Below are positions 36,100 to 60,933 of a stretch of 64,000 nt of DNA, one piece after another; the first letter of the stretch is position 1, and each line of letters opens with the position of its first letter. The position numbers were made by a program, and so were the translations under genes. Source of the DNA: Rhodosorus marinus CCMP1338 (taxonomy: Eukaryota > Plantae > Rhodophyta). The stretch covers positions 1,922,001 through 1,986,000 of the forward strand of contig JAMWBK010000008.1 of NCBI GenBank assembly GCA_029953675.1, written 5' to 3'. The notes below the pieces were generated by a model. That model had not been told where the DNA came from. It worked only from the letters and a program-made list of their open reading frames with translations, and did not search any database.

Positions 36100-39000
36100 T
36101 CACTGATTGTAGTCCGCTTGCGACGTCTTGCAATCGAGCCTGGCACTCCTTTGTGCACGGCTCTGTCGTTGCCGTTGAGTGGCTCCGACGTCTGTCGAAT
36201 CCGATTTTTTCCCTGCACCAAGCAGGGATGACGAATTCACCCCGGCAGATGTGCGTCCTGATCGCACATCCCTGACCTTGAGCTGCGACGATTCTTCCTC
36301 TTCTCCCGCGGGGTTCACTTCAACTTCCCCGCCTTCCGTTGGCTCAGCTGGAGGGTCTTTTGCGCTCCTTCCCTGTTCCACTCCCAGTTCTTTCCCCGGA
36401 GAATCTGTGGTGTTCTCATCCAACACGGCGAAGCGGGCGGAAGACAGCTCGGATTCTGGATCGACCACGGTCAAGTCCTCTGGGTCTTGCTTGTTATAAA
36501 TCAATGGGTCCTCTGAAACCCCAATAGCATTCGGGGTTCTGTCAGCAGGTTGTTCCTGGTGCTCTGACGTCACAGCTCCCAATGATTGACTGCGTATCGC
36601 CATGGCTCTGCGCTTCCTCGGGGTCGTCGAGCGATTTTTCACGGCAGGCTTGATATCGCTTTCTTGCGAGCTTGGTTTCCTTGGAAGGGGCATGTCAATC
36701 CGCTGATCACCTGCGACATACTGCTCCTGTTCGCGTGGCGAGAGTTCTACTGCAATGGCTTCGCCTGTACTGTTAAGCTGGTCTAGATCCGAGGGGGTCG
36801 GGAATCGACTAGAATCAACCTCCGCAGCGTCCGCATGCAGTGTGGCCGTTGCCCGCTCCCTTCTCGGCGGAGTACGTCCGTTCTCGATCCCCGTCCTAGT
36901 CCCTCCTAGCACGTCTGATTCGATCTGTAAATACTCCTGCGCGATGACAGCTTCACTATCCGATTTCTCAGCCAGCCCTCCAGATATTCTCATCTTGCGA
37001 CTTGTGACAGGATCAGCTCCGCTGCGGGTACTCCCTGTTCGTCTCGGATGTGTGTCCAAGTCGGATCGCTTGTCAGATTCCTTGGAAGCCACTTTCCCGT
37101 CTTTCGACTCTCCTATTAACCTCTGAGCCCCTCTCTCTTCTCTGTCAGTTCCACGGTCTTGTGTCTCCTCGCCTTTCGATTTTTGGATCTGCTTCGCGGA
37201 CGATCGCTCCGCGCCACGTTCCTCCTCATGGCCCGATACATTTTCCAATTCGCCAGCATGACTTCGTCTAGTGGGTCTGCTTCGGGGGGGTGCGCCTGCA
37301 TCTTCCAGCAAGCGTCTCTCTGCATCGCTTGGAGCAGCGACAGGTCGTACGGTATGGTTTTCACGTCCTTCTCTGTCGACCGATTCCGCGAAGACCGGCT
37401 TGTCAACTGCTGTAAGTCCAACAATCTCCGGCACCCCGGAAGTTGGCAGTTGGTCTTCGGACTTTTTGTTCTCTTGTCTCTCCGAGGTCTCGAATACAAT
37501 GTTCGGCTCCACAGTTTGATTCTTCGCCCTGCTTTGCCCTCGTGTTTCTTCAGAATTAGTAAGTTTTTCTTGCTTGTCAATGGGCGCATCTGGGTGGACC
37601 GGTTTGGTCGGCTCCTGCACAATCTGCTGGTTTTCCTCAAGGGCTTGCGTATCCTTCATGCCACCGGTTGATCGTTTTGGATTCGTCTTCTCGCCTGCTG
37701 ACTTTCTCGTCTTCACCACCACAGCATCCACTGTACCAGGCTTCTTCGCGTGCTTCGATCTCCTAGATCGACGGCCATTTCCGCTCTCCTTGCTTCGCTT
37801 CTTCGGTTGGGGCGTTTCTCTTGCTTCCAGAGCTTTATCGAGTTGGGTGGATTTCTTGGACTCGGTTTTGGGGTCGACGTCGATATCAACGCTAGTTCCT
37901 GATTCTATCACACCGGCTTCGATACTCCCTGCCGCTAGCTTGACTTCGGTATCCACATTCTCTGCTGATCGCTTGATCTCGATTTTTGGAGTCACGGCGT
38001 ATGACTTGAGCTCTGCTGTGGCCGCTGTTGCGGATTGCTCGACCTCCACTTTAGCGTCCTTCGTAGATTCCGCTTCTACCTCCGGTTCCAATTGGCGCGA
38101 AGATTCCGCTTCTACCTCCGGTTCCAATTGGCGCGAAGATTCCGCTTCTACCTCCGGTTCCAATTGGCGCGAAGATTCCGCTTCTACCTCCGGTTCCAAT
38201 TGGCGCGAAGATTCCCCTTCCGCAGTTTCTCGATCTGCAGCACTGTCCACGACTCGGACTTCGCCTTGCTTCCCTGAACTCTCCCCTTCACGTGGTTCTG
38301 ACATCACGGATGCTGTTTTCCCCGGTTCTCGCTTTTCAATTGATGGAGCTGGTTCTCCTGAAAGGCGTGGTTCTGTTGGCTTGGAATCACTTGCAAGAGT
38401 ACTACCTTGACTCAGTTCGTAGGTGAGTTCCGCATCTGCTTCCGCAGTGGTTCCCGCTGCACGCCTTTCAGGCTTTGCCCCAGCTTTTCTGCCGCGACAT
38501 TGACCGTTCTTCGCTCCCGTCTGTTCGACCTCCATTTCGTCGGTCTTTTCAACGGGAACCTGCTGACGCGACTCGGTGGTCTGTTGCTCCTTAGCACCAG
38601 CTTCCTTGCTTTCCTGAGAAGCGCCTTTAGTGATTTCCTTGCTGGTCGTGGCATCCTCTGGCACCTGAGTCGTCCGCACTGCTTGAACTGAAACTGAAGA
38701 TTGCCTCCCCACCAAGGACGGGGTCTCAGATTTCTCCACAGCTCGGCTTTTACTACCCCTCGGAGTTTTCTTCCGTTCTTTCTTTCGCGACTCTCCCTCG
38801 CTCAGTATGCGACGTTTTCGGGTTGGTTTAACCTTCTCCGCTGGGATTTGTGGAGTGGCGATCGGAGCCTTTCCTGATTCAAGCTCTTCTTCCTCCTCAA
38901 CGTACTCGGAAGAGGCGTTCGCCTTCATCACTGGTTTCTCATTCTTGTTGGATTCACCTGGAGGCTGATCTCGTGTTCTACGTGGCTCTGCACTTGCGGA

Positions 39001-42000
39001 GCTGCCAGCGGGAGTCAATCCTGAAGACGCTCCTGTTGGTTCAGAAGCAATCCTAGCTGGTGCGGGATCCGCCTCCGTCGCCGCAGGGACGGCTCGCGGA
39101 GTTGACTTTTCTGCACTTGCGCTGGTTTGCCTTAGTTCCTTGCCTGCACGACCCGCTTCCCCGTCGTTAGTTCGCTCCCTCTCCTTGGCTCTAGTTGAGC
39201 CCTTGGGCCTTCCCCGCCGTCCACTGGTCGCAGTTGGGGCTGATTTAATAGGTGTTGCCTGAGATCCTGGTGCTTCGTCACCCTGAGGGCCATTTATTGC
39301 TTCAACGGTCAACTTCTTCGATACCGCAGAAGGCTGAGCCGGTGTCTTTGCTTCCTCTTTCCTTTCTACTTGCTGATTAGCATCGTTCGTTTTCTCAGGA
39401 GTCTTTCTGGGCCTGCCCCGAGGCCTTCGTTGAATCTTCACTTCTTCTTCCTCGTAGTCTTCATCATCGTCCTTCTCAGATTCAGATGACTCAAGTTTAG
39501 GGATCGAACCTTGGTCGTTCTCACCCCGCGAAATCATATCAACGTCGCTGTCGAACGAAGTTCCGTCCATTCTTCGGCTAACCCTCGCTTCGAATTTTCT
39601 TTGCTTTGCCAACGCCGCTTCGTTCAAATCTTCTCCAGACTCCAAAAGGTTGGTGATTTCCAGTTCAGTAAGATTATCCGCGTAGCACACTTCCTTCCTC
39701 TTTCTCCGGCCTCGACCCATCTGCTCTTCCTTTTGGACTTCGACAGGTTTGTCCGGAGCCAATACCCAATCCGGAAGGTCATCTTTGGACAAGAGAAGGC
39801 GATCGCTTTCCCACTCCCCACCGGCTTCCTTTCTTGCTGCCTCCAAATCTTCAGCTTGCTTATCCATATCCATAAATGTTTCGAACTCCTCCTCTCCCCT
39901 GGCGATGAGCTTGTTCAGGAGCTCCTCCGTCGGAACGCCCTCCTCCTCTCTGTTGGACTCCTCAGCCTTGTGGTCCCGAAGCATGTTCTTAAGGAGCTCT
40001 CTTCTCTCAGCGTCCGAACTTTTGTTGTCAAACCTTCCGGCCTGAATGATGAGCTGGTCCTTGCGGAGTTTTTGGTTTGCTTGCTCAAGGATCTTCTCCT
40101 CAACCGTGTTCGCCGAGACCAGTCGAAAAACTCGCACTTCATTCTTCTGACCAATTCGCCAAACACGATCTTGCGCTTGTAGATCCATCTGCGGGTTCCA
40201 GTCGCTGTCCAAGAAAATTACAGTATCCGCCGTTTGCAAGTTCAAGCCCAATCCACCAGCGCGGGTGGAGAGAATGAACACTCTGAATTCGTCGGATGAA
40301 TTGAACATGTCCAACATGTCCGGTCGATCATCCGCTTTGGTCCTCCCATCTAATCGTAAGTACTTGACTTTCATATGTTCAAGCAGGGTGCCGAGGTAGT
40401 CGAGTGCTGTAGTCATTTGAGAAAAAATTAGACACTTGTGGTTGAACCGGAACAGCTTTGGCAAGACGCGAGACAAAAACTCGAACTTTCCGCTTGAGCG
40501 CACGAGAAACGAGCTTGGCAATGTCCAGACTTGATCGTCGTCGTAGAAGAGAAACGGATGGTTGCAGATTTTCTTCAGCTGCATGATCATATTGTTGAAC
40601 CTCTGAAACCCCGCTCCATCTCCAAGGGACACAGCAGCTTTGTTCTGTACCTGGCGATACAGGACCTTCTGCCATTCGGATTGCTGGCAACGAATGACGG
40701 TCTCAATTTTATCCGGAAGTTGTGACTCAACTTCCGACTTCAGACGCCGAAGGAGAAACGGTCTCAACACTTGATGTAACCGATTGATAATAAGAAGTTT
40801 TTCCTCTTCGTTCAGACCCTGAGTTTCCCCCGACCCACCAAGACTTTTCTCCTGTCACAATTCAATGGAATGAAAAACAGTTTGAGCAACTAGAACGGGC
40901 TTGCCCGCCAAAGGTCATTAATGGCTTGGTTACGCGCCTCTCCGCGCCAAGTTGGCCTTACCTGAAATGGGGCACTAAACCAGTGCTCAAAATTCTCGGC
41001 GGTCTGGAAGATTTCCGGCAGAAGAAAGTTCAGCAATGCCCACAGCTCCGTCAGGTTGTTCTGGAGGGGTGTTCCCGTCAACAGCAAACGATTATTCGAG
41101 CGATAATGCGTCGCAAGTATTTGGGCTAGCTTCCCGTCAGCGTTCTTCATCCGGTGCCCTTCATCGACAATGACGTGCCTCCACTTTGACTTTCCCAGAA
41201 CTTTCTTGTCGCGCACAACAAACTCGTATGTTGTCAACAACACATTGAGATCGTTGTTGCCCTTTAAGTATTTTAGTTGGAGCGCCTTCCGCGCGTTCGG
41301 GTCTCCTCGATAGACTACTTTTGTAGCGGAAGGTAGCCAGAGGTCCATCTCGCGTACCCAATTCCCCATTGTGGAGAGAGGCACGATGATCAGGAACGGC
41401 CCCTGCACGTCTTTAGATTCCATGAGGTAGGCAATGAGCGAAATGGTCTGTATCGTCTTCCCGAGTCCCATCTCATCTGCGAGGATTCCATTCAGCCGAT
41501 TGTTGAAGAGGGAAACCATCCACTTCAACCCCTCGAGCTGATAGTACTTCAGGGTGCCCCCTACAAGTATGGAAGGCTGCCTAACCTCCTCCTTGATTGT
41601 GTGAGTTATGGAGTAATACTCGTCACGTCGCCGTCGCATTGACTCATACAGGGTATTTCCCCCTTTTTCTTCCTCCTTCTCCTCGATTGCTACGTCCTCC
41701 TCGCCCTCTTTACTATCATCCGCGAGACGCTTCTGCATTTGCACTTGCGCACCTAACTGTTTCATGTACTCACCGGTCTGCTCCAGAAGATGCATAACGC
41801 GATCGCTCTTCGTCTCCTCAAGGAGTTTCATATACTCCTCCTCATTGTTCTCCTTGAGAGCCTTGAACCGGTCCTGCTCGAGTTTCTTCCGCTGTCTCTC
41901 TCGCTCCTTCTCCTTCTGAACGTGGTATTTCTCAGTATCCCTGCACAGCTTCAAGCGTGCCTGATTCCGGTTGTTTTGCCAATCACGGAAGTTGGCGACG

Positions 42001-44600
42001 TGCTCCATGAGAAGGCCCAGGCTACGCTTCCTTTCTTGTCTCTGTCGATCCTCCATATCCCTTCGCTGCTTCATGACTTGCCTCGCAACTCGATTGCGAT
42101 GAATAACTGAGCCGTGAATCGTGTCCTCGTGCTCTCGTCGTCGGGTGGGCATCGCTTTCCCTGACCTTCGGATTGGCGCTACTAGGCTTCTTAGCACGTC
42201 CCTAGTACTAGTTCGGACCTTGCGCTGTAGCTGTAAAAGCCGGATCTTCTTCATTTCTATCACGGCCCGACGTCTAATCTCTTCTGGAAGCTCCAAGGGA
42301 AGGTCGTGGAGTTCTACGAGGCGATTCCCCATCCGATCTATCATTTCCTTCTCACGCATCTCGAGCATAAGACGTGAAACTTGCTGCTTCGACTTTCGGT
42401 GTTTTACTGCCTGCTGAGCGTTTTGGCTCATGAGCTTTCGCCCATTGCCGATTTCATGATCAAAATGCCCGTTCCCTTTGTTCACTTGAGCGGACTTCTC
42501 GCTCTGATGTTCTGGAGACGTCTTCAGGGCCCTTTCCTTTTCCCTTGCCAGCTTTTGCATCGGAAGTCCGTTCTCTGTGTTTTGAATGTTTACCCGCACA
42601 GCACCTTGCCCCTGCCCGAGCGGTTCGGGGTTAACCTTTTTTTCATTCATTCTTTCAGAGCTAGTTAGGCCTTTAGAATTCGACGACGCGGAAAACTGCT
42701 CGACGGTAATGCCCGGCGTGTGAGCTGGTTCTGTCCTCTTCCGTTCCAAGTTAGAATTATGCAGCGTGACATTTCCCTTTGCCGGATCTGGGTCCAGCTC
42801 AACGCCCGCTACTGGTTGCATCAGTGCCTGTCGTCGGTTGAACAGCTCCTCTTTTTGCTCCATTAGCTGTCTGTTGAAGAGCTCTTCCTTTTGCTCCATA
42901 AGTTTCTGCAGTTGGAGCTCGAGTTCCGAAGAGCCATTCGCGGCTTTCCGATCCTTGCGATTGTCTTGTTCATTCGCAAGCGGATTCGCTGCGCCGCCAT
43001 CATTAGCTAAGGAAACTTGCGGCTTGAACGCCTCGCGGGAAGCCTTGTCGGCGACTAAGCCCTCCAGCAGTCCTTCCGCTGTCGCGTCCTGGGCATTCGA
43101 CTGAATCTGGTTCTGCCCCTGAATCAGCGCCTGGATCTGAGGCTGCAAGTTCGTGGCTACTTGAGGTTGAAGCGGAGTCTGGCTCTGTATCTGGGCGTGA
43201 AGTGCTGCTTGAAACTGGGCTTGCATCTGAGCCTGCATTCGCACTTGTTCTTGCATGTGCGCTTGCCTCTGGGACTCCATAGTATTCTGCAGGTGTGTGT
43301 TGACTTGGTCATTCTGCATCTGGGTCTGGCCCTGCGGTTCCTGCATCATGGGGTGCATCTGTCCGTGGAGTTGGGCCGGTCCTCCTTTCATGGCTCGCAT
43401 CTTTTGACTTTTCAGCATCTGTGGGTCGACTTGCCTTTGGAATTGTTGCTTCAGCATCTCTTGCTGTAACCGTTGCTGCATTAAATTCTGGGTTTCCGCC
43501 TGCTGCGTTTGTTGCTGCATATAGATTTGATTCGCCATCTGCACGGACAATTGCGCGTCCTGCTCGTTCATCGGTATTTTTTCAGGCTGGGTTTGTTGCG
43601 TTCGCATGAGCATTTGCATCTGCAGCTGCTTGTCGTCGAATTTCTCCATCGACTCCCTCTGACCTTGCCGTACACCTGACATGAGGAAAGCTTTGTCCTG
43701 ATTCGCGTACTGCCATGCGCTCTCTTTCGCAACGTCACTGCCCGCATTCGATCCGGACTCCACACCGAGCATCGGTCCTGACTGCATTAACGCGTCTTGA
43801 GCTGCCGCAAGCTCGCTTCCATAGGGGAAACCTTGTTCCGGTGCCATTCCGGCCCCTGGTGAGTTGTTCACCGATTGTACCATGTCGTTCATAGCTAGCT
43901 GTCTTGATAGTAGCAACGAAGGATCTTCCCGTTGTAGTTTTGTACGTGGGCTGCTCTTCCTCGCTGAACCTACAGCCATCTGATTGTTATGGCTGTTTGC
44001 CAGGTTAGTATTCACCCCCATCAGCGCTGCGTTTCCCTCAGTCGGATACAGGAGTTCGTCCTAATCAGGTGAAGTTACCAGGCACAGTGAAAAAAAGTTT
44101 AGCAAAGCGGAGCTCCAGATAGAAATAGTTTAGCAAAGCGGAGCTCAAGATAGAAATAGTTTCGTTTGGAACTCATGCGGCAACACCAAGAAACGTTGGC
44201 AGCTTACCGATGCCTGCCCACGTCCTTGATTATCCTGCGGGCGAAGTAAGCCTTCCACACCCGAATCACCATTAAATAAACTCGAACCCATTTGCGACTC
44301 ATCTACAACTCCCAAGTCAAGACCGTTTCCGAACTTCCAGTCGTTTTGGGTCATACTTGGCTCGCCCACAGGAGCCTTGCCACCTATGAGCTCGTCTACG
44401 GCCGCGTCCTTTCCCATTGCCAATGCGAAAGCACCGTCCATGCCCCCGGGCACTCCGTCTCTGTCGTGCGGCTGTCCTTGTAGAAACCTCGACCCCATAG
44501 AAGACTCTCCCAGAAGCTCAGCCATCTGCCCGGGCGGCTGAAGCTCCTGTTTCAACCTCCCCCGCCCATAGAATTCCTCCTCGAACGCTCTCGGGTCCAT
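36100..44600 (-). CDS. SNF2: SNF2/BRM/SYD-type SWI/SNF ATPase with Q-rich N-terminus, HSA, SnAC-like region, AT-hooks and a ~1000-aa disordered tail, 3 exons
   Basis: [70 protein letters not shown] and [13 protein letters not shown]; AT-hooks RPRGRPRK and RRGRPKG. In-phase GT-AG introns at 44207-44061 and ~40960-40852. Confidence 0.95.
38065..38215. repeat. Four perfect 36-bp coding tandem repeats ([12 protein letters not shown])
   Basis: AGATTCCGCTTCTACCTCCGGTTCCAATTGGCGCGA x4 plus a 7-bp partial copy, with no spacers. Confidence 0.97.
44096..44162. repeat. 31-bp tandem duplication in SNF2 intron 1
   Basis: AGTTTAGCAAAGCGGAGCTC(C/A)AGATAGAAAT x2 plus AGTTT. Confidence 0.9.
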
Positions 44601-45835: not shown

Positions 45836-48800
45836 ATGGACTGGAGGATTTTGACAAGATTCGCGCATCGAGTCGACCGCTGTGGTAGGAGATTTATGGG
45901 AAGGTCAGCGTGGCGACCGAAACTGGGAAAAGGAAACGCTAGGACCGAGGAGGAGTGGTTGAATTTGAAGGCTAAAAGGAAATGGGCAACGCGGAATCAC
46001 GAGTTTAAGGAGCTCCTGGACAGGAGGAAGGGCATGAGCAATCTCCCAGCAGATGATGTTTCCGCTTTCCGAAGACCTCCCCCAGTGAGGACCCCAGCAG
46101 GTGACTTCAAAAGGCGCCTGAGAAGCTTGCATGGTGGGACGATTCGGGTGTTTGATAACACTATCAGCATCCAGGATTTTGCCGCAAACCTCTCGGCGCC
46201 GACGGAAGATATTCTGGAGGCAATGAAGTACCTCGGAGAGGCTGACCTGTCTCCTACATCGATGCTATCCAGAGAGGACGCGGAGATTCTCGCATCAGAA
46301 CTTGGATGCAAAATAGTGGAATTCAAACCAAGACTAGATGATCGAACGCGAACGGAAGTGGCAGACGTTGAGGTGCTCAAGTCCCTTCCGTATGCGTTTC
46401 AATCCAGTCCTAGCAACGTTTGCCCTTTGTGTTTGTGTATTTCTGACCCATAATCTCGTGATCCTCCAGGAGACGACCGCCGGTTATTACTGTCATGGGA
46501 CACGTCGACCATGGGAAAACTACCATTATAGACTGGCTGAGAAAGAGTAACATCGTTAAAGGAGAAGTTGGGGGAATCACACAGTCTATAGGTTCCTTCA
46601 AGGTTTCCACAAGGGCTTTTGACGGCAAGAAATCTCATCTCTGCATCATCGACACTCCAGGTAAGCTTCGAGTCGCCTCAGGAGAGCTGCTTACTTCCTC
46701 TGGTCGAGCAACACTCCTTGGGGGGGGGGGGCGCGGGGAGGTTCTCAACCTCGAGTTGTCAAATCTATCTCGCTCGGAAGTGCTTGAGTCGGTGCTCAAT
46801 GCCGTCAAGAGAATTGTTTTGAGGCCGTTGTTTTGCATGTTCTAACCGGGGTTTGACCTTGTCCGTGTAGGTCACGCAGCTTTTCAACAGATGCGAGAAC
46901 GTGGGGCCAACGTTACCGACATTGTCCTACTGGTGGTCGCTGCTGATGATGGCCCTCTTGCAACGACCTTGGAGGCGATCAACCAAGCAAAGCATGCAAC
47001 TATTATAGTTGCGATTAACAAGATTGATTTGCCGAATGCTGACGTCGTTAAGACGAAAAAAAAGTTGGCTGAAGTCGGAGTGCTGGTACGTAGGGTTCCT
47101 CGAAAGCGAGAGTTTCATGCTTAAGAATGAGTGTTTCCAGTTTAGGGACTAGTACCAGCTCCGAGCTGTCCCAAGCTTTCCTGACTGGTTCCTGTCATCA
47201 CCACTAGGTCGAGGAACTTGGAGGTAAAACGCAATGCGTAGAAGTCTCCGCAGTGAAAGGAACCAACATGGAAGTATTGGTTGAGACCATCTCGTTTCAA
47301 GCTGACCTACTCGATCTGCACGCGGATCCGTCGGCTCCTGGCGAGGCGGTTTGCCTTGAAGCCTACGTGGACAAGAAAACTGGTCCAATGGCGAAGGCAA
47401 TCGTAAGGTAGGACGTTGTTCTGGCCCCGGACTTTCGCATATTTTGCGCTTCAAGCGCTGGTTAACAGAGTTTTGCCCTACAGTAGCCTTTTCCGGGCCT
47501 GTGGAACAGTTCCCTGTCCTAGAGAGTAACCGATTTACCAGGGAGTGGAACCGGTTGGATTCGGGCCTGGTCAGTGACTAACTTGCCGGCTTTCGCATGT
47601 TGTCTCCATTTCAATGTGTAAACGTGCTCGTTGTAGGTGGGGAACTTTGCGACCAGGCGATATCATAGTATGCGGAAAGACGCATGGGCGGGTTAAGTTT
47701 CTTAGGGATGAGCACGGGAACAATCTCAAGGATGCGCCCCCATCTACGCCGGCCCTGCTATGCGGGCTCAGAGAATGCCCTGAAGCTGGCTCCGACATTC
47801 TTGTCGTTGAAAGTGAAAGAGAGGTGAACAAGGTACTTCGCTCTAGGGAAGAGATTCAATCGGCGCACGTCGACCTGGGACAAGAGGAAGCCGTTCCCAT
47901 GGAGGAGTACGACAAAACCAAACCACCCTTAGGGAGCGCCAACTTCATGGGGTATTTGCTAACCAGTCATTTTGATCAATTGCGATGGTACCAGACGAAA
48001 CCTTCCAGGGGATCTCTATCAGACAGCCGCCGTGTTTATTATTAAGGCCGTTGACCAGGGCTCGTTGGAGGCAATCCATGTAGCGCTTCAGGGGCTAGAG
48101 AAAAAAGGCGTAAAGATGTACATATTATCATCTTCTGTGGGCGACGTAAAGAGAGGCGAAGCGAACATTGCGTATCGGATGAACGCAACGATCCTTGCCC
48201 TCGGGGTAAAAACTGATCGGGAGGTTCCACCCTTGTTGGCGGAAATGAGGGGCCGTTGGAAAGCTGAAAGAGCCGTTCCGGGGTCCGGAGTACCCGAGCG
48301 GGCTTTTTTCGCGGTAGGAGACTTGCAGCCATAGAATCCAATCACCGTCGGCCTTAGATTGGGCGCTTGGATCGTTTCTGACTCATTGCACCCGTCTCTT
48401 TTCAACCATAGATTCGAAATCACCGGGTCATATACAGACTATTGGAGGACGCGGAGAACATTTGCAAAATGAAAGCGATAACAAAGTATAGGGACGTGGT
48501 GAGAGGAACAGCCACTGTTCTCAAGGTACGACCCGAAAAGTTCCCCCTCCCCCTTTGAGTCTTTGCTCTTTGGCTCATGTAACCCCCAGACTAACATAGC
48601 CTGCATTGGGTCTCCGGGCACTCTGCGCCGCAGGTGTTCAATTTTGGACCGAAGATTGGTCTTATACTCGGCTGCAGGGTTGACGACGGAGAGTTGACCA
48701 TCAAGGCAAAGGCACGCGTCAAGCGAGGTACCGAAACCGTGTTCGAAGGCCCTATATCCAGTTTGAAGATCGTCAAGGACGAAGTTATGAAGGTATCATC

Positions 48801-48921
48801 AGGAACTGAATGCGGGGTGGGCATGACTGGTGCGGAGCTAATTGAAGAGGGAGACGTCATCGAAACTTTCGAAGTGGTCAAGAACGATTTCGAAAGCCTT
48901 CCCACAATTCTTTCCACTTAG
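45836..48921 (+). CDS. infB: Translation initiation factor IF-2, organellar (probably mitochondrial), multi-exon
   Basis: Spliced [30 protein letters not shown]|[38 protein letters not shown] and [19 protein letters not shown]. Confidence 0.93.
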
Positions 48922-49298: not shown

Positions 49299-49820
49299 CT
49301 ACTCCATCGCTTCCTCCATCGTTTCCTCCATCGCTTCCTCCATCGCTTCCTCCATCGCTTCCTCCATCGCTTCCTTCAGCGCCTTCTTGCATTTCTTGCA
49401 CTTCTTGCAAACACGCTTACACTTGGACTTCTTTCCCTTCTTCTTCAGGCACTTCAAGCATTTCTTGCAGGCCTTCCTTACCTTTTCAGCTGCCTCTTCG
49501 ACCTCCTCAGGCATCGCCGGCTCGCACTCACCGCAGGTCACCGGGCAAGCCTTCATGACTGCGGAGGATGCGCACTCTTCGACAAGCTCATCCTCGTCAA
49601 ATTCGGCGAGCTCCTTGCAAACCCGCTTGTCCTTGCAAGGCATCTTCTTCTCTTCCTTGACCATTTCGCAGTAATCGGCACATTCCTCCCTGAAATTCTT
49701 GGATCTGCATTTCACCGCTGGGTAGTCCTCGCACACCTTTTCAATCTCTGCGTCCGTCTCACCTGCTTGGACAGCGACAATTGCCGCAGCAACAAATAGA
49801 AAAGCACAAGCAATCTTCAT
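49299..49820 (-). CDS. Secreted ShKT-domain protein, Lys/Glu-rich paralog (173 aa)
   Basis: Signal peptide MKIACAFLFVAAAIVAVQA, a 4-Cys unit, ShKT-type C.D...C...C...MKACPVTCGEC, a Lys-rich 7-Cys block and an (EAME)x6 tail. No intron seen. Confidence 0.85.
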   Translation of the reverse strand: MKIACAFLFVAAAIVAVQAGETDAEIEKVCEDYPAVKCRSKNFREECADYCEMVKEEKKMPCKDKRVCKELAEFDEDELVEECASSAVMKACPVTCGECEPAMPEEVEEAAEKVRKACKKCLKCLKKKGKKSKCKRVCKKCKKCKKALKEAMEEAMEEAMEEAMEETMEEAME

Positions 49821-51093
49821 GTCTGATGTCTGAATGTTCGTCTGTGGTACCTGCTCTGATCCTACAATGCCCTGCCTGCCGAAGTAAGTTCGCTGGAGGT
49901 TGGGTTTGCTCTCCTTCTTATAGTCTGTTGAACAGTACCCCAGCTGGAGGAATTTCTGGAAAGTCACATCACAGGCCTTGCGGTACAAGACATGGCGAAA
50001 GTCTCATTCGCCAACTGTTGACTGAATTTTTGACTTCTCTACTATTCCAAAAAAAAGACGCACAAGAGTCTGTTCATCGAAATAAAATCCTGGCGTTTGC
50101 GTATAGATGAATCCCACAAACCAAAAAGCATATTCTGCTGGTCGATTCCCGCATCCCAAGCCAATGGACTCGTTTCATAATCGTTTCGTCAGGAGGTGGA
50201 TCAATTATTATTGACACGAGCACCAAAAAAAACTCAAAAAACAGTTTGTTGGTTCAGTCGTGAGCCATCCATGCAAAGCTAAGCAGTTCTAGCAAGGGCA
50301 AAATAGGTGAATAGCAAGGGGGCATGTTTTGAGAACAGTCGCGCCGAGTTGTGATTGTACGCTCGCGTGGACAGATCAAGGAGTGGATGGAAGATAAGAA
50401 ATTGCCGGTACGAGTAGCTCAGAGATGAGGAGAAAAAAAGCAGCTGGGATACCTGACAAATGATGGATAGTCTGTCCCTCACCGTGCCCGTACTGGAGGA
50501 GACGGTTGATCAATCAAAGATACCTCTCTGTCATGGGTGTGCTGGTGTGGTGACCTGAGACGCTGAAGCACCGCGTATTTAGTTTTTGGGAGACAAGAGC
50601 CACTAGAACCTTATGATTTGGTTGAGAACGACCATCAACAGGAACAAAATGGTCAGGATCTGGAGACTAGGGGAACTTTTCAATAACGTCGAGTTGTCTG
50701 GTCTGAATCCGATTGATGAATTGCCAGACGGTTGGCGTTTAGTATAGACGAGACTTTCGGAAATATTGGAAGATGATTACAGGAAGACCAAAAAATCAGG
50801 TTAACATCTTCAACTTGCGATGCCGCACCAGAGCAATCTCTCACATGTCCAAGCAATTTGTAGCTTCCATGCATCAGACTATCCCTTGACATGAGCCAAC
50901 CAATATTGTCTCTGCACAAAGTACGTAAATTGAATGAATCCAACAACTGTCGAATGAATTTGTTTCATTGGAGACTGAAAGAAGAAACCCCGAGTGCGGA
51001 AAAAAACAGACTGAGCGCGGCCAAGATCGCGCACGTTCATACGGTGCACAGCAAGAAACTATTAGGGTCGTCATAAGCAATTCGATAATGGCT

Positions 51094-51142
51094 TGGACAA
51101 TTGAACAAGTGCTAGCAGTGCTAGCACTTATTCAATTGTCCA
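51094..51142. repeat. 49-bp near-perfect palindrome (24-bp arms, 1-nt centre)
   Basis: TGGACAATTGAACAAGTGCTAGCA-G-TGCTAGCACTTATTCAATTGTCCA; arms match at 23/24. Confidence 0.95.
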
Positions 51143-51854
51143 GAAAAGTACGGGGTGTCCGATTGAAATTCTTCTAAAAACCCTGTCCGTCCGATAAAAC
51201 GTCCAATATTCATTCAAGGAGAAGCTAGAAGTCAAGCATCTCCGGTTCAGGTATTGAATCATGATTACTTCTCACTTTACCAAGCGGTTATTCTCATGTA
51301 TTGAATAATGGTTACTTATGGATTGGACAGACTGTCATAGACATTTTCAGATGAAGCTGGCGTCCTGAATTTAACCTTAGTGCTGTGATGCAGACCGTTG
51401 GAAGGCCCAGCAAATTCATTCACTCAGCATTCTTGAAAAAGAAAATCCCCTCGGGGTGGACAAAGACGGTTTAAACTCAATCAATATTTGTCATTGATTG
51501 AATAATATCGGACATCAATCGGCTATTATCTGTTCGTTATCCGATGAGGCTTATTTTTGTTTTACAATTCAGGTCTGACTAGCGTATATCGGACAGAGCG
51601 CGAAGCAAAAACGTTATGTTTAACTCGATATTCAGGTATAGTATTCTTATATAGGACTGTCTGGGTTTGAAAAATTCTATGTTTTCACTGACCCATCGGA
51701 TACCAATTTTGTACAATTTCACTCGAATTATTAATTCGAGTCGATCTATCAAGTACAGCAATCCACAAATCCACCAAAGCACTTTTCCGTGCTGAAATTT
51801 AGTCAACTTGGATTGGCTAAAAATTAGAGACAGCATTTTATTGGGCATCCAAAC

Positions 51855-52346
51855 TCACCCGCCGTTTCGTCTGCAGATCGAGATCTGCCTTAGGGTCTCG
51901 TAGGTGGGTAGGTGGGTAGGTAGGTCTCCTTTTTGTAAGGAAACGTAGACGTAGTTCTGGATATTCAAAAAAAGACGGTATGTAGTGTTCTTCGCTCTTT
52001 GGAGTTGAGGGTTTGAGGAATAACTAGGTTTTGAAGCGTAATCCCACCCACCCCAAACCCCAGGCAAAAAACTGTTGAACCGGCCTATACTACGTTTGCT
52101 CGGTTCGGCTCGTGCGTCACGACAAACAGCAGCAAGAGGAAAATGTCTCGGTTCACAATCGACTGGTGAGAGATAGAAATTGATTTCCACATAGAGGTGC
52201 AGCCCGCCATCTGGACTAAAACGAGATACTACTAGAAGATATCCATGATTCGTGTTCATTAAGAAAGAAAACTCTACATCCCGGTTCCGTCCATGTACCT
52301 GTAAAACCCTAAACCCTTGATGGGACTGCGGAATCACTCTGGGCAA
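51855..52346 (-). pseudogene. Possible MATH/TRAF-like domain remnant or orphan ORF
   Basis: 163-aa open frame with no ATG at its start. LVVSRFSPDGGLHLYVEINF...FNSFLPGVWGGWDY resembles a MATH strand pattern. Impression only. Confidence 0.25.
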
Positions 52347-53970
52347 GTGAAAAAAAAGCTAAGCGGCTGGGTCCTTGCATCTTGGCCGCGACGAAAAAAG
52401 GGGAAAACTATTAGCTTCGAGCGCTTCTAGCGTCCTGGCAACATATTCACATCTGAACTCGCCAAAATATTGCTGGCCAGTAAGGAGATGCTACTTTGGT
52501 CGCGACTCTAATTCGATTTTGTTTAACGGAAGGTTTTGCCGGAATGGCACTCCTCAATAGAATTTTTTTTATAGAAAATATTATGCTTTTTGGACGAAAT
52601 TCTCAAGTTGACAAATTGTAACCAGCAAATGGAGCAGTCGATCAACGGACAAGCTTTGTCAATTGAATCTTGAGTTGTGTGACCGCGGAGGCTCGCGGGA
52701 TTTTTTTTGGTTGATTCTATTCGCTTTTGGTTAAGTCTTTGACGGGTTGGTGTGCGTAAATCTGAGCGGTGTGCTCACGACTTTCCATGTACAAGCGGCC
52801 CGTTCATCTTGAAGGCCCACAGGACACGTTGACACTGAATGAGCAGAATCAGAATAAAAACGCACAGTTCCTTAAAAATGGACAGGGTCTCTGCCGTTCG
52901 AATGCTGCCCTGTTGTTGGACGCGCGTCATCATCGTTTCCGCTCCACAGGGTAGATAAACTCTGAATAAATTGTTGCTGCTTACATTGCTCCTGCGGTCC
53001 GGATCTCTTGGGTTTGGCCCAGGGTCCATGGCAAGGTAACCTACGTACCTTTTGTTAAGGCCGTGAGAATCGTGATGACGCTTGTTGTCGCCACCAATTT
53101 CTGGGCTCGTATCATTCCTGAGAGACCTCCGAACGAGATGCCGCACGAATTACATTCTGAGTGAGCATTTGAACCGAATTGGCTACAGTCTGTCGAAGTC
53201 GAATCGGAGCTACCTCGACCAGCGTCGGCTCGCACCCCCCTGATTGCAGACCTCCTGGTTTTTGGGCCAGCCGCCAGACGCTCAGAATGGTCGAACTCGC
53301 CGTCACTTGCCCATTGTTAAGTACCCATGTCCGATCTGCTGCCCTACGCAGGGTTGCACCAGCTGCTATTCTTCGCCGACAGAAGGAGCGCCGGTACACT
53401 GAGAGCATGGCCAATCTCCCCCGAGCTGAGGGCGGGGCGCAAAGTTTTCAGCCCTTCTTGTGGAAAGCTTTGATCTCCTGGATAATTCAATTGTGAGGTT
53501 GTGTCGTAAATGTTTTCACTGACGGTTGACTGTCGCGTTACGGAGATATTCTAGCAGCATGGTAGCCCTGAGGCTCGCCACCTCCGCATTGGTCAGAGCG
53601 CTTTCATCACTGGTTCCTAGTTTGTATTGCACTTTGCGCTTAAGCCTGTTTTAGTAACACCACCGCATGGTCCCCGCGCGAAGTCAAGCTTGCTCTGGTA
53701 GTTTTGGTACCTGAAAATGGACCGAGTGAGAAGGAAATGGTCACAAACAATCCAGACAACAAAATGTGGGTTTCAATTCTGTACTCAATGATAGTTTTGA
53801 GCACAAAACAGGCACCATTGCTCGGGGAAGAAGCAGGGAGCTTGATTGAATGAGTGCGTTTATTCGGAGATCAAAAAAAACCCGAGGGAAAAAAAAAGGA
53901 CTACGAAAGGCGCAAATCATTGTGGCGTTTGTTGCCTGCTCATGGACACAAACTATGAGGTCGTGGCGAG

Positions 53971-53982
53971 CTAATCATCTCT

Positions 53983-54017
<35 letters not shown>

Positions 54018-54121
54018 GACGCCAGCGGCAACGCCTGCAGATCGACCTGCACCTCTTCGGGCGCCTATTCCTCCTGCATCTGTTGCACCTCCTGCGGCAA
54101 CGGCGTCCCCTGCGACGGCCA

Positions 54122-54168
<47 letters not shown>

Positions 54169-54293
54169 ATCATCGTCATCGTCGTCGTCATCGTCGTCGC
54201 GATCCCTTCCACCACGTTCGCGGTCATCATCCTTGTCATCGTCGGCGGCACGAATTGCAGTGCGACAACGCACGTCCTCGTCATCGTCATCAT

Positions 54294-54325
<32 letters not shown>

Positions 54326-54708
54326 TCGTCGTCATCGTCGTCGTCGTCGTCATCGTCGTCATCGTCGTCGACATGAGTTACGGAGAAGTTTTCGAGGTCA
54401 TCATCGTTGTCATCGTCATCGTCATCGTCGTCGTCATCTGGGCAAAGGTCACACATATTGGGACAGCTGCGGGCAAATCTTGCACTTTTTTTGCACCTTC
54501 TTTCTATCTCATCGTCGTCATCTCCACCGAAGCGTCTACTGCACCATCCTTTGTCGACACAGGGCTTTCCGCAGTATCCGGGACATAGCTCTTTGAATGC
54601 CGCTTCATCGCACATCACCATCGGGTAGTCATCGCACTCAACCTCGTCAGCTCTGACCGCTACGGCGAGCAGAGCCAAGGCCAAGAAAGCCACAGACAGC
54701 CTTTTCAT
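53971..54708 (-). CDS. Secreted ShKT-domain protein, Arg/Asp-rich paralog with poly-Asp tracts (245 aa)
   Basis: Signal peptide MKRLSVAFLALALLAVAVRA, the same Cys scaffold as 49299..49820, three long poly-D runs encoded by mixed GAC/GAT, and an Arg-rich 6-Cys block. TATAAA lies ~145 nt upstream. Confidence 0.88.
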
Positions 54709-58989: not shown

Positions 58990-59622
58990 CCTCTATACAT
59001 TATGCTCTGTGCAAGGCGAGAGGAAACTAATACGCATGCGCTTACACGCAGCCATGGAGGAAGTAGCAAAGCCGGTACTCGCCAAGATGTCTGTCGGGAT
59101 GATGCACTAGTCAAGCCTAGTGCATACTGCCTTTCTTTGCTGACCTGTTATCCCGTGAACTTCGGCCTATAGTACGGCACGCCGGCTTTGAAATCGAGAA
59201 GCCCTGCCTGTTGCAGCCTACTACGTTGATGAACGTCGAGTGGCTGACCTCGTGGTCACCTGTAACGTTAGCCGGCGCGACGTACGTTGATCTTGCTGTT
59301 CCTAATCCTCTGCTAGTCGCTATTTACCGGTTCCGGGAGTGCCGTGGATTGCCGCTGCCAGTATGAGATGTCACGAAGAGTTGAAAAAGTGCGGGGGTCT
59401 TGTCTTCCCCAGGCATACGTGCTTCGGCTCTAGCTCATCGCCTGGTACCTCTGGTAATTTGAGTGCTTTGGGTTTACGGATTCCGTTGGTTCTCGTTGGC
59501 CTGGGGAATTCTTCCACAAACACCCTGATCGTCTGTCCTCGTTGTGTACCCGTTTAAGTTTCTTGCTGTGGCGCATGAACTCTCCTTTGATGTTGGAGGC
59601 GCGATATCTTCGCCGCGCATAG
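58990..59622 (+). mobile_element. Second, more decayed CRE/SLACS-like LINE 3' end (zinc-knuckle remnant plus REL)
   Basis: Across frameshifts: HALTRSHGG...TRQD, RRVADLVV, TYVDLAVPNP, SRYLP...AAASMR, and ECFGFTDSVGSRW...HPDRLSSLCTRLSFLLWRMNS. Collinear with the ORF at 16508..16930. Confidence 0.75.
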
Positions 59623-60933
59623 TCTTTTTTCTTTCAGTCTCCGATTTAACTGAATTCATTCGCTCTTGACCGCAGGGAGCGGCTTGGAAACACACCGAAC
59701 ATAGAACGTTTATCCACCCTGAGGAACCATAGAATTCCCACTCATGCCCTAACGTCTCAGCGTGGTGTAATTCTGAAAACGACAGGAAACGAAGTATATG
59801 CCTGCGCTTCCGCTTCCGAAAGCATTAATTTCTTGCACTCAAAATCGGAATATCGCAGTGTTCTGCATTCGAAGATGTGCGGTCTCATAAACATTGGTGT
59901 GTGTCCCCAGCTCTAGGAGCACGACTGCGTCAGCAGCGTCTTTCCTAGTTGTTAGGACTTCACCATAGGTACGGGATATGGATTCGAAACCAGTAGCGCT
60001 GCCGCGAGCGACGAGAGAAGATGACCTGAGCGTGATTCAAGTACTACCTCATCAAGATTCAACACCTTGGATGGCGGTGACCGTGGTATCCGGAGTAAGA
60101 AGTTCCGGGTCAGCGTCAAAGCTTCTGTGGTGCGGTTCGCGGAGGGGCCATATAGAGCGTAGCAGTCAACCGGCGAGAACCTTTGCCGGGTGAGGAGCTG
60201 AGAAGCCCTTCTTCAGCTATGTTTCGTTCTTCTGGCACAGGGATACTGTCGATGTTATATCGCTTCTGGCTCTCCGTTGTCGGTGCACGTTTTGGAGACT
60301 CTGTCTGATCGCTGATCTACACGTCACCCTGGTCACCGCATGGTCAGTTTGCTCAAGAGCAGCTGTTGATGCTAATTTAAACAGTCTTCTCAACGTGGCT
60401 GGCTCTAAACGCACAGTAGAATTGGGCCTTGACCGACACTAGATACGAAGAAGTGAACTCGTCGCTGTCATGAATAGTTATTCATCGCAAACCTTGAGCG
60501 AAGAAACTCATGATCAGTTAAGCCTTCCTCCCAGTTTGCATCATTACCTGTGCGTAAAGTCACAAGGCAGTGTTTGACCATTCTGTTCTGATTCTCTGAA
60601 TAAGTCGAGTGTATTAATAGCACTTAGCACCTTTGTGTGGTTGGTAAAGTCCCCGCGCTCAGCTTCCAACCCGGCATAATGACGCCCCTTCTGGTTCTTG
60701 GCAGAAATGAAAACCGACCCTATTCGACTTCCCCTAATCGTGAGTGTTCGTACTCTGCAAACGCCGTTCCAAGATCGGTGAAGTTTAGGGAGGTCAAAGC
60801 ACCTTTGCGGAATCGCCGCTCAAGTTTGGAATAGCAAGGACCCTCTCAACCGCTGAAACCATCATCCGTCCACATTCTCATCGGTGTACAAGGTTTAACA
60901 ACGTCAGGGTTGGTCTGGAGTTACGACACAATG

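Follow-up and report, generated by a model that had tools for sequence, protein, structure and literature searches.

A Rhodosorus-restricted family of putatively secreted cysteine-rich proteins with a conserved polycationic block that is rich in lysine in one branch and in arginine in another

The red alga Rhodosorus marinus (class Stylonematophyceae) is marine and unicellular. Here, we characterize two genes, designated A and B, that are located on the minus strand of a 64,000-nucleotide stretch of the R. marinus CCMP1338 nuclear genome (contig JAMWBK010000008.1 of assembly GCA_029953675.1; the whole stretch is referred to below as the window, and coordinates are those of the window unless another contig is named). 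A and B belong to a Rhodosorus-restricted family of small secretory-pathway proteins that comprises at least three paralogs. Besides a putative signal peptide and a ten-Cys N-terminal module resembling the ShKT domain, the members share a polycationic block of roughly 28 residues with six Cys, in which the Lys residues of the A branch are replaced by Arg in the branch formed by B and a third gene, paralog C. By contrast with this cationic block, the acidic segments of A and B are unconserved products of tandem-repeat expansion. The tentative reading that we favor is that A and B are extracellular polyanion-binding proteins.

Results

Genes A and B belong to a family with orthologs in other Rhodosorus lineages

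An earlier note, made from the letters of the window, had described two single-exon, same-strand genes lying about 4 kb apart. This description was accurate: A and B, each of which is called as a gene on the R. marinus contig, are intact and uninterrupted minus-strand open reading frames (ORFs) separated by 4150 bp, with no called gene between them. By BLASTP, the N-terminal domains of A and B matched with E=1e-8 at 36% identity. Only four relatives (P0001, P0002, P0003 and P0004) were retrieved from 5.8 billion clustered proteins. P0001 and P0002 are of the A type; P0003, from the MMETSP R. marinus transcriptome, is of the Arg/Asp (R/D) type and orthologous to paralog C; and P0004 represents paralog C itself as modeled by NCBI (NDN08_004568 on contig 7, JAMWBK010000007.1).

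Orthologs are present in two other Rhodosorus lineages, including in cDNA-derived contigs. The contig carrying P0001 (L002) shows collinearity with the window that starts 140 nt upstream of A, spans A and extends into the convergent gene for translation initiation factor IF2; because two IF2 introns (48314-48410 and 48528-48631) are absent from it, we regard L002 as a cDNA-derived contig of the syntenic A ortholog. The contig carrying P0002 (L003) aligns over both flanks of A and likewise holds a syntenic ortholog, and the loci of B and paralog C have about 1 kb in common, flanks included. Transcripts were therefore found for part of the family, i.e., for the A ortholog on L002 and for the C ortholog P0003, but not for B itself.

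An alignment of six proteins (A, P0001, P0002, B, C and P0003) revealed 15 invariant Cys columns, comprising all ten of the N-terminal domain and five of the six in the basic block, the sixth block Cys being offset by one residue. Together with the BLASTP match, this bears out the expectation that the Cys scaffolds of the two proteins would align significantly. A six-frame hmmsearch of the window and of the paralog C locus (contig L005) with both family profiles revealed no copies beyond A, B and C, and none of 89 pattern matches obtained by scanning JGI metagenome contigs with the family alignment was confirmed.

The coding sequences are under constraint and evolve faster than a housekeeping neighbor

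Substitution rates were estimated by the method of Nei and Gojobori. Comparison of A with its orthologs gave dN/dS ratios (omega) of 0.36-0.40 at dS 0.43-0.63, with values of 0.36-0.45 in the mature parts. Between B and C, omega was 0.21 for the N-terminal domain as against 0.04 for the basic block, where 22 of 23 residues are identical at dS 0.45. At the nucleotide level, the coding sequence (CDS) of A is 82% identical between strains as against 71-73% for its flanks; the corresponding protein identities are 72% for A and about 89% for the neighboring IF2. Judged by these comparisons, the A/B family consists of real protein-coding genes under constraint, which evolve faster than their housekeeping neighbor.

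The putative signal peptide of the A lineage is identical at 19 of 19 residues in three lineages at a dS of about 0.6, while the mature protein is 66-72% identical. Some five changes would be expected in this segment by chance (P roughly 0.002 per comparison). The signal peptides of B and C are less conserved (14/20).

The basic blocks align and are predicted to form a helical hairpin

The earlier note had aligned the basic Cys-rich blocks of A and B by inspection, and this alignment withstood a shuffle test. The A/B block score was 57, as compared with 37.8 +/- 6.6 for composition-preserving shuffles, and was reached in 34 of 5000 of them; the blocks thus share residue order and not composition alone. 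The Cys spacing is C-x2-C-x2-C-x9-C-x3-C-x2-C(-x2-C) in A, where the block is followed by a seventh Cys at residue 144, and C-x3-C-x2-C-x8-C-x3-C-x2-C in both B and C. All six members have a positively charged block (A +15, P0001 +11, P0002 +6, B +16, C +15, P0003 +11). The block is approximately 55% basic with a Cys content of 21%, and that of B contains a single hydrophobic residue other than Cys.

AlphaFold2 (AF2) models of A and B were built on five-sequence alignments. The model of A had a mean predicted local distance difference test score (pLDDT) of 69, with short helices and values of 60-75 in the N-terminal domain and values of 80-90 in the C-terminal part, and contained a helix-turn-helix formed by residues 105-126 and 131-172. 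That of B had a mean pLDDT of 52, and here the basic block was again modeled as a helix-turn-helix (residues 196-214 and 217-228; pLDDT 70-77). As read from the sequence, the Cys residues of each block helix fall at positions i, i+3/4 and i+6/7, i.e., on one face, so that three inter-helix disulfides could staple the hairpin. The block is thus plausibly a disulfide-stapled helical hairpin, the remaining surface of which would be all Lys in the A branch or all Arg in the B/C branch.

A profile of the basic block (49 columns) gave no match at E<=10 in the protein search, the block being too short and too biased in composition for relatives to be detected in a database of that size. The possibility that the block is a third, compressed ShKT unit was also considered and was not supported by hhalign (E=0.19).

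The Lys/Glu and Arg/Asp alphabets run through the whole of each gene

The two paralogs had been described as using Lys and Glu in the one case and Arg and Asp in the other, outside the ShKT part. The contrast in composition is genuine: mature A contains K29 R5 E34 D6, mature B (225 residues) K7 R34 E9 D100, and mature C K4 R28 E13 D42. Its supposed confinement did not hold, however, since the bias is also seen in the N-terminal domain, where the K/R counts are 10/3, 9/3 and 7/5 in members of the A branch versus 5/6, 4/10 and 2/12 in those of the B/C branch. The K/R and E/D bias is therefore gene-wide and runs through the conserved N-terminal domain as well. In the aligned basic block, the K/R counts are 13/2 for A as against 1/15 for B (Fisher p=7e-6), and here the Lys-versus-Arg contrast is a true replacement, position by position. 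The Glu-versus-Asp contrast is mostly the outcome of two independent repeat expansions.

Base composition was examined as a cause of the K-to-R and E-to-D shifts and was rejected: the GC content at third codon positions (A 0.68, B 0.61, C 0.52) and the CGY codons fit no simple mutational explanation. Half of the Arg codons of B are CGY, two to three steps away from AAG, so that the swap is old and did not arise from a single mutational bias.

The acidic segments are tandem repeats that are not conserved in the family

The architecture proposed for both proteins had included a shared acidic linker and acidic tail, and this part of the proposal failed. The linker comprises 14 residues with a net charge of -5 in A versus 110 residues and -70 in B, and is not acidic in the A orthologs, in which it carries net charges of -2 and +3. 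The tail of A, in which Tandem Repeats Finder (TRF) detected a repeat of period 12 with 6.2 copies and 96% matches, differs in the orthologs and is K-rich in P0001; C and P0003 stop directly after the basic block and have no tail. TRF arrays cover positions 54122-54438 of the poly-Asp linker of B, which AF2 modeled without secondary structure at pLDDT below 50.

Linker and tail taken together have net charges of -12 in A, +4 in P0001, +5 in P0002, -79 in B, -38 in C and -24 in P0003, and these values do not track the charge of the block. Overall net charge ranges from +5 to -68 across family members. The sequences thus indicate that the acidic segments are young, lineage-specific tandem-repeat expansions that are unconserved and non-homologous between A and B. 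The idea of a conserved charge pattern in which residue identity is switched wholesale has to be narrowed accordingly, as only the cationic block (+6 to +16) is both conserved and swapped.

The N-terminal module contains a divergent ShKT-like unit

The N-termini of A and B look like signal peptides when read by eye, in agreement with the earlier note: each begins with MK or MKR, followed by a 15-residue hydrophobic core and V-x-A ahead of the charged mature end. The four-Cys unit C-x7-C-x8-C-x3-C that had been described in both proteins is likewise present, its Cys columns being invariant in all six family members. In hhalign, this unit matched the ShKT unit of the family with a probability of 74% (E=2.9e-5), C-x8-C-x3-C being paired in both. 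It is plausibly a truncated ShKT-like duplicate that corresponds to the C-terminal half of the ShKT unit.

The second unit is spaced C62-x5-C68-x14-C83-x8-C92-x3-C96-x2-C99 in A and C50-x5-C56-x15-C72-x9-C82-x3-C86-x2-C89 in B. Both conform to the ShKT spacing C-x(3-6)-C-x(n)-C-x(6-9)-C-x3-C-x2-C, and the six Cys are invariant in the six members. The Pfam ShK model, which the earlier note had proposed running on both proteins, did not match A or B at E<=10, nor did Pfam yield anything else credible for them; P0002 (16.2 bits, E=0.016) and P0001 (11.4 bits) scored below the gathering threshold of 20.9 bits, and P0003 had no Pfam ShK match.

An exhaustive HMMER search of 1.84 billion representative proteins with the N-terminal family profile yielded nine proteins at E<=1e-3, two of which are family members and seven of which lie outside the family (E 1e-8 to 4e-4). 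Most of these seven are proteins with tandem six-Cys ShKT-like repeats and were aligned over the ShKT unit, P0009 being aligned over the four-Cys unit instead. Amongst the seven, only P0012 passes Pfam ShK (26.9 bits), P0011 being sub-threshold. Two were traced to marine sources, namely Phaeocystis antarctica and a metatranscriptome run that we take to be from Tara Oceans. A sequence search of the PDB with the same profile gave no match. P0003 and P0004 bear the UniRef name "ShKT domain-containing protein".

We therefore refer to the domain as a divergent ShKT-like unit, given that its spacing fits while the Pfam model and the PDB sequence and fold searches fail. The ShKT domain claimed by the earlier note is upheld as regards six-Cys spacing, but not as regards the Pfam model. 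Kinship with ShKT, for which the evidence is the Cys spacing, the weak profile matches to protist ShKT-like repeats and the UniRef names, is thus weaker than had been stated.

The NCBI model of paralog C is probably wrong

The NCBI model of paralog C (L005:8001-8586) contains a 61-nt intron that shifts the frame over the basic block and gives an Ala/Gly/Thr-rich C-terminus. The uninterrupted ORF at L005:8001-8522, in contrast, encodes the conserved block RRCRRRCNRC...CRRC, and the transcript-derived P0003 reads the same frame. The model is probably wrong, since P0003 keeps the uninterrupted frame together with the conserved block.

In C, the codons TGA TAG stand in place of the CGC TGG of B and end the protein ahead of the tail (L005:8520-8586 compared with window 53971-54030); what is left of the tail, with its original GAT GAT TAG end, is found in the 3' untranslated region of C. 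The loss of the tail through stop codons suggests that the acidic tail is dispensable. As P0003 ends at the same place as C, the truncation appears to be older than the split between the strains.

Features of the two genes and their surroundings

The features of A and B are listed in Table 1.

Table 1. Coordinates of genes A and B and of the protein segments that they encode
Feature	Position in window	Strand	Basis
Gene A, K/E-type paralog, complete single-exon CDS, 173 aa + stop	49299..49820	-	ORF, ATG at 49820
A, signal-peptide-like N-terminus, residues 1-19 (MKIACAFLFVAAAIVAVQA)	49764..49820	-	Read by eye: K in n-region, 15-residue hydrophobic core, V-Q-A before G
A, putative unit 1, four-Cys C-x7-C-x8-C-x3-C, residues 30-51	49668..49733	-	Invariant Cys columns, hhalign
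A, unit 2, six-Cys ShKT-like, residues 62-99	49524..49637	-	Cys spacing, profile matches to protist ShKT-like repeats
A, short linker, residues 100-113 (14 residues), net -5	49482..49523	-	Charge count
A, polycationic Cys block, residues 114-141; K13 R2, net +15	49398..49481	-	Alignment, shuffle test, AF2
A, C-terminal tail with (EEAM)n	49302..49397	-	12-nt tandem repeat at 49302-49375
Gene B, R/D-type paralog, complete single-exon CDS, 245 aa + stop	53971..54708	-	ORF
B, signal-peptide-like N-terminus, residues 1-20 (MKRLSVAFLALALLAVAVRA)	54649..54708	-	Read by eye; aligned with that of A
B, putative unit 1, four-Cys C-x7-C-x8-C-x3-C, residues 25-46	54571..54636	-	BLASTP, family alignment, hhalign
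B, unit 2, six-Cys ShKT-like, residues 50-89	54442..54561	-	BLASTP, alignment, profile matches
B, poly-Asp linker, residues 90-199 (110 residues), D77, net -70, one unpaired Cys	54112..54441	-	GAC/GAT triplet repeats
B, polycationic Cys block, residues 200-227; R15 K1, net +16	54028..54111	-	Alignment, shuffle test, AF2
B, acidic tail (RWRR + D11 + RDD), GTC triplet repeat	53974..54027	-	TRF 53983-54016

Several long ORFs overlie B in other frames or on the other strand (53850-54596 (+), 54083-54376 (+) and 53940-54374 (-)). These were rejected as genes and are by-products of the GAC/GAT triplet repeats; the ORFs overlapping B include His/Arg-rich, poly-Ser and Met/Thr-rich ones.

The stretch at 50-60 kb around the two genes contains few or no called genes and has a GC content of 0.43 at 50-52 kb. 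Dispersed repeats are present at 53048-53522, 59334-59633 and 50952-51039; they match four, at least six and two places, respectively, in the paralog C locus (L005), in both orientations and at 68-85% identity, and are probably transposon-derived. Convergent with A is the 3' end of the IF2 gene, at about 47600-48921 on the plus strand, with approximately 380 bp between the two stop codons; its two introns are confirmed by the spliced contig L002. Since L002 runs on from IF2 through A, the convergent transcripts either overlap or were merged in assembly. At 36100-44021 on the minus strand lies a large, intron-bearing gene for an SNF2/Brahma-type chromatin-remodeling ATPase, in the translation of which the DEGH and helicase motifs are seen. 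The AT skew of -0.34 at 36-44 kb is attributable to the Q/K/E-rich coding sequence of this gene.

Discussion

The family conserves a secretion signal, the ShKT-like disulfide domain and a hairpin that is polycationic and predicted to be stapled, and it is on account of these that we favor, at somewhat less than an even chance, the reading that A and B are extracellular polyanion-binding proteins. The secreted hairpin would bind polyanionic polymers multivalently, the most likely target being the alga's own sulfated extracellular polysaccharide, and its charge density might be high enough to withstand the ionic strength of seawater. The ShKT-like module would provide a second, protein-type binding surface, and the acidic repeats could serve as spacers that are dispensable, as counter-ion segments loaded with Ca2+/Mg2+ or as shields within the molecule. 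With the K/E branch predicted to be helix-prone and the R/D branch disordered and Arg-based, the paralogs may differ in ligand preference or in material properties. Red microalgae secrete sulfated extracellular polysaccharides (PMC9693049), and a block that has hardly any hydrophobic surface and is so strongly basic would suit polyanion binding better than membrane insertion.

A number of observations weigh against polyanion binding as the function of these proteins. The signal peptides were judged by eye only. The AF2 models derive from five sequences, their pLDDT is low (60-75 in A, 47-62 in B) over the ShKT region, for which the ShK fold would call for disulfides C1-C6, C2-C4 and C3-C5, and Foldseek comparison of the model of A with the PDB returned only generic helical hairpins at E>4. 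Depending on the member, the mature proteins carry 16 or 17 Cys, so that full intramolecular pairing is not guaranteed. Support from cDNA and transcriptome data covers the orthologs of A and C and none covers B itself. Electrostatic binding is screened by seawater. Finally, the signal peptide is invariant while the mature part evolves faster, a pattern that is typical of defense-peptide and toxin families rather than of matrix proteins.

This last point leads to the main rival, namely that A and B are precursors of host-defense (antimicrobial or anti-grazer) peptides, which we consider possible though doubtful. The signal would then direct secretion, the hairpin would be the active peptide and would act, like a protamine or an alpha-hairpinin, on the anionic envelopes of microbes, the acidic repeats would form an anionic pro-region that protects the producer, and a further bioactive module may be provided by the ShKT-like unit. 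The contrast between the fully conserved A-lineage signal (19/19 in three lineages) and mature parts at 66-72% identity fits such a function, as do the omega of 0.36-0.45 in the latter, the faster change of A relative to IF2 (72% versus about 89% amino acid identity), and a small, genus-restricted and duplicated family located in a repeat-rich, gene-poor stretch. The predicted Cys-stapled helix-loop-helix also resembles the alpha-hairpinin antimicrobial peptides of plants, and the order of signal, acidic segment and cationic Cys-rich peptide recalls defensin-type precursors. However, the charges are not matched (-79 to +5 in the acidic segments as against +6 to +16 in the block), the A-branch orthologs essentially lack an anionic pro-region, and the family alignment contains no conserved processing site ahead of the block, which is itself full of dibasic sites. 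Moreover, the hairpin has hardly any hydrophobic face, and A departs from the strict four-Cys alpha-hairpinin motif C-X3-C...C-X3-C.

An unlikely alternative is the one that the earlier note had put forward, i.e., a matrix, adhesive or mineral-binding family of block polyampholytes in which the alternation of acidic and basic blocks is itself functional, through Ca2+ or mineral binding or through coacervation, whether written in K/E or in R/D. Strongly acidic and strongly basic blocks are indeed both present in A and in B, mature B has 100 Asp among its 225 residues, a composition typical of Ca2+- and mineral-binding proteins, and the replacement of K by R in the aligned block is genuine (p=7e-6). 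Against this stand the positive charge of linker plus tail in P0001 (+4) and P0002 (+5), the absence of a tail from C and P0003 and its loss in C through stop codons, the origin of the acidic blocks as independent tandem repeats of differing unit lengths, and the spread in net charge from +5 to -68. Mineral binding in particular finds no support, and Rhodosorus is not known to mineralize. It is very improbable that the CxxC-rich block, instead of forming disulfides, coordinates Zn2+, Cu+ or Cd2+ as a metallothionein or a zinc ribbon would: it does contain several C-x2-C pairs 8-9 residues apart and is 21% Cys, but a Pfam scan of A, B and three relatives revealed no metallothionein or zinc-finger match, the protein enters the oxidizing secretory pathway alongside a ten-Cys domain of the disulfide type, and AF2 predicts regular helices, neither a knuckle nor a ribbon. 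Least credible of all is that the genes are non-functional low-complexity ORFs or pseudogenes born of repeats. Much of B consists of triplet repeats, which give rise to long ORFs in more than one frame and on both strands, B itself lacks transcript support, and the NCBI model of C is frame-shifted; yet omega is well below 1 at substantial dS, 15 Cys columns are invariant across six proteins, A and C have cDNA-derived orthologs, and the CDS is more conserved than its flanks. For A and C, non-functionality is already contradicted.

No characterized family with this architecture was found in protein searches, the PDB, Pfam or the literature (queries ShKT + red algae, Rhodosorus + secreted, and ShK + diatoms), in keeping with the suggestion of the earlier note that the family is undescribed; its members are Cys-rich proteins of the secreted type. 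The known ShKT/SXC proteins (PF01549, PS51670) include the ShKT-mucins of nematodes, secreted proteins whose ShKT units lie on either side of low-complexity regions, and many marine protist proteins with ShKT-like repeats. They share with A and B a signal peptide, the six-Cys spacing and fusion to low-complexity sequence. However, A and B fail the Pfam ShK model, their orthologs reaching 16.2 and 11.4 bits, and have in addition a four-Cys half-unit before the domain and a C-terminal polycationic six-Cys module that has no detectable relatives. Protamines are Arg- and Cys-rich sperm nuclear proteins that have no signal peptide. The block of B resembles them in that R plus C exceeds 75%, suggestive of strong polyanion binding, but A and B differ in having a signal peptide and an extracellular-type disulfide domain, and there is no homology.

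Defensin-type precursors combine an anionic pro-piece with a cationic Cys-rich peptide. They are similar to A and B in possessing a signal, an acidic segment and a cationic, disulfide-rich segment of about 30 residues, and in the conservation of the signal alongside a variable mature part; A and B depart from them in their unbalanced charges, in the lack of the acidic segment in some members, in having no evident processing site and in the extra ShKT-like domain. The poly-Asp and polycationic proteins of biomineralization include Aspein and Asprich of mollusks and the silacidin/silaffin pairs of diatoms. Long poly-Asp (in B), K- or R-rich cationic blocks and entry into the secretory pathway are points of similarity. 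Membership of this class goes with a conserved acidic domain in a mineralizing organism, whereas the acidic segments of the A/B family, poly-Asp included, are unconserved tandem repeats; the cationic part is predicted to be Cys-stapled and not Ser/Lys-rich and modified, there is no homology, and the host is not known to mineralize.

The closest structural parallel is with plant alpha-hairpinins, four-Cys helix-loop-helix peptides of the pattern XnC1X3C2XnC3X3C4Xn whose intron-less precursors bear a signal peptide and a C-terminal prodomain (PMC7191063). A and B are likewise intron-less signal-peptide precursors with a basic, short, Cys-stapled helix-loop-helix, the last being predicted, and the alpha-hairpinin core C-X3-C...C-X3-C is embedded in B and C, together with two extra Cys. 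In A, on the other hand, helix 1 carries C-X2-C-X2-C, and the blocks have six or seven Cys rather than four. Their charge is far denser, at about 55% K/R, and each precursor has a single module fused to the ShKT-like domain. Furthermore, the host is a red alga, not a land plant, and the resemblance is one of predicted structure and Cys pattern rather than of demonstrated sequence homology.

What is new here, as far as the sequences indicate, is the polycationic Cys module and the branch-specific charge alphabets on a secreted ShKT-type protein; already known was the automatic ShKT label on two of the relatives. A more far-reaching proposal, which in our view is rather doubtful, is that the hairpin, stapled by three disulfides and with a Lys or Arg surface, is a previously unseen extracellular module, and that two paralog lineages have each fixed a pure, gene-wide alphabet, helix-prone K/E in the one and R/D with disordered poly-Asp in the other. 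If true, the family would offer a naturally occurring pair in which to examine the effect of Lys as against Arg, and of Glu as against Asp, on polyanion binding, self-shielding or antimicrobial action at the salinity of seawater, and could represent the first class of cysteine-stabilized polycationic defense or matrix-crosslinking peptides from red algae.

On a practical level, the analysis exposed a probably mis-modeled R. marinus gene, that of paralog C. It also illustrates that a seemingly conserved "charge pattern" can arise from independent repeat expansions, the cationic block alone being constrained. Should the structural prediction hold, the secreted ShKT-type proteins of this little-studied lineage of algae would gain a new disulfide-stapled polycationic module, and the matched Lys-only and Arg-only scaffold would be useful for understanding why Arg and Lys are not interchangeable, be it towards sulfated polymers, towards microbial envelopes or in phase behavior at high salt.

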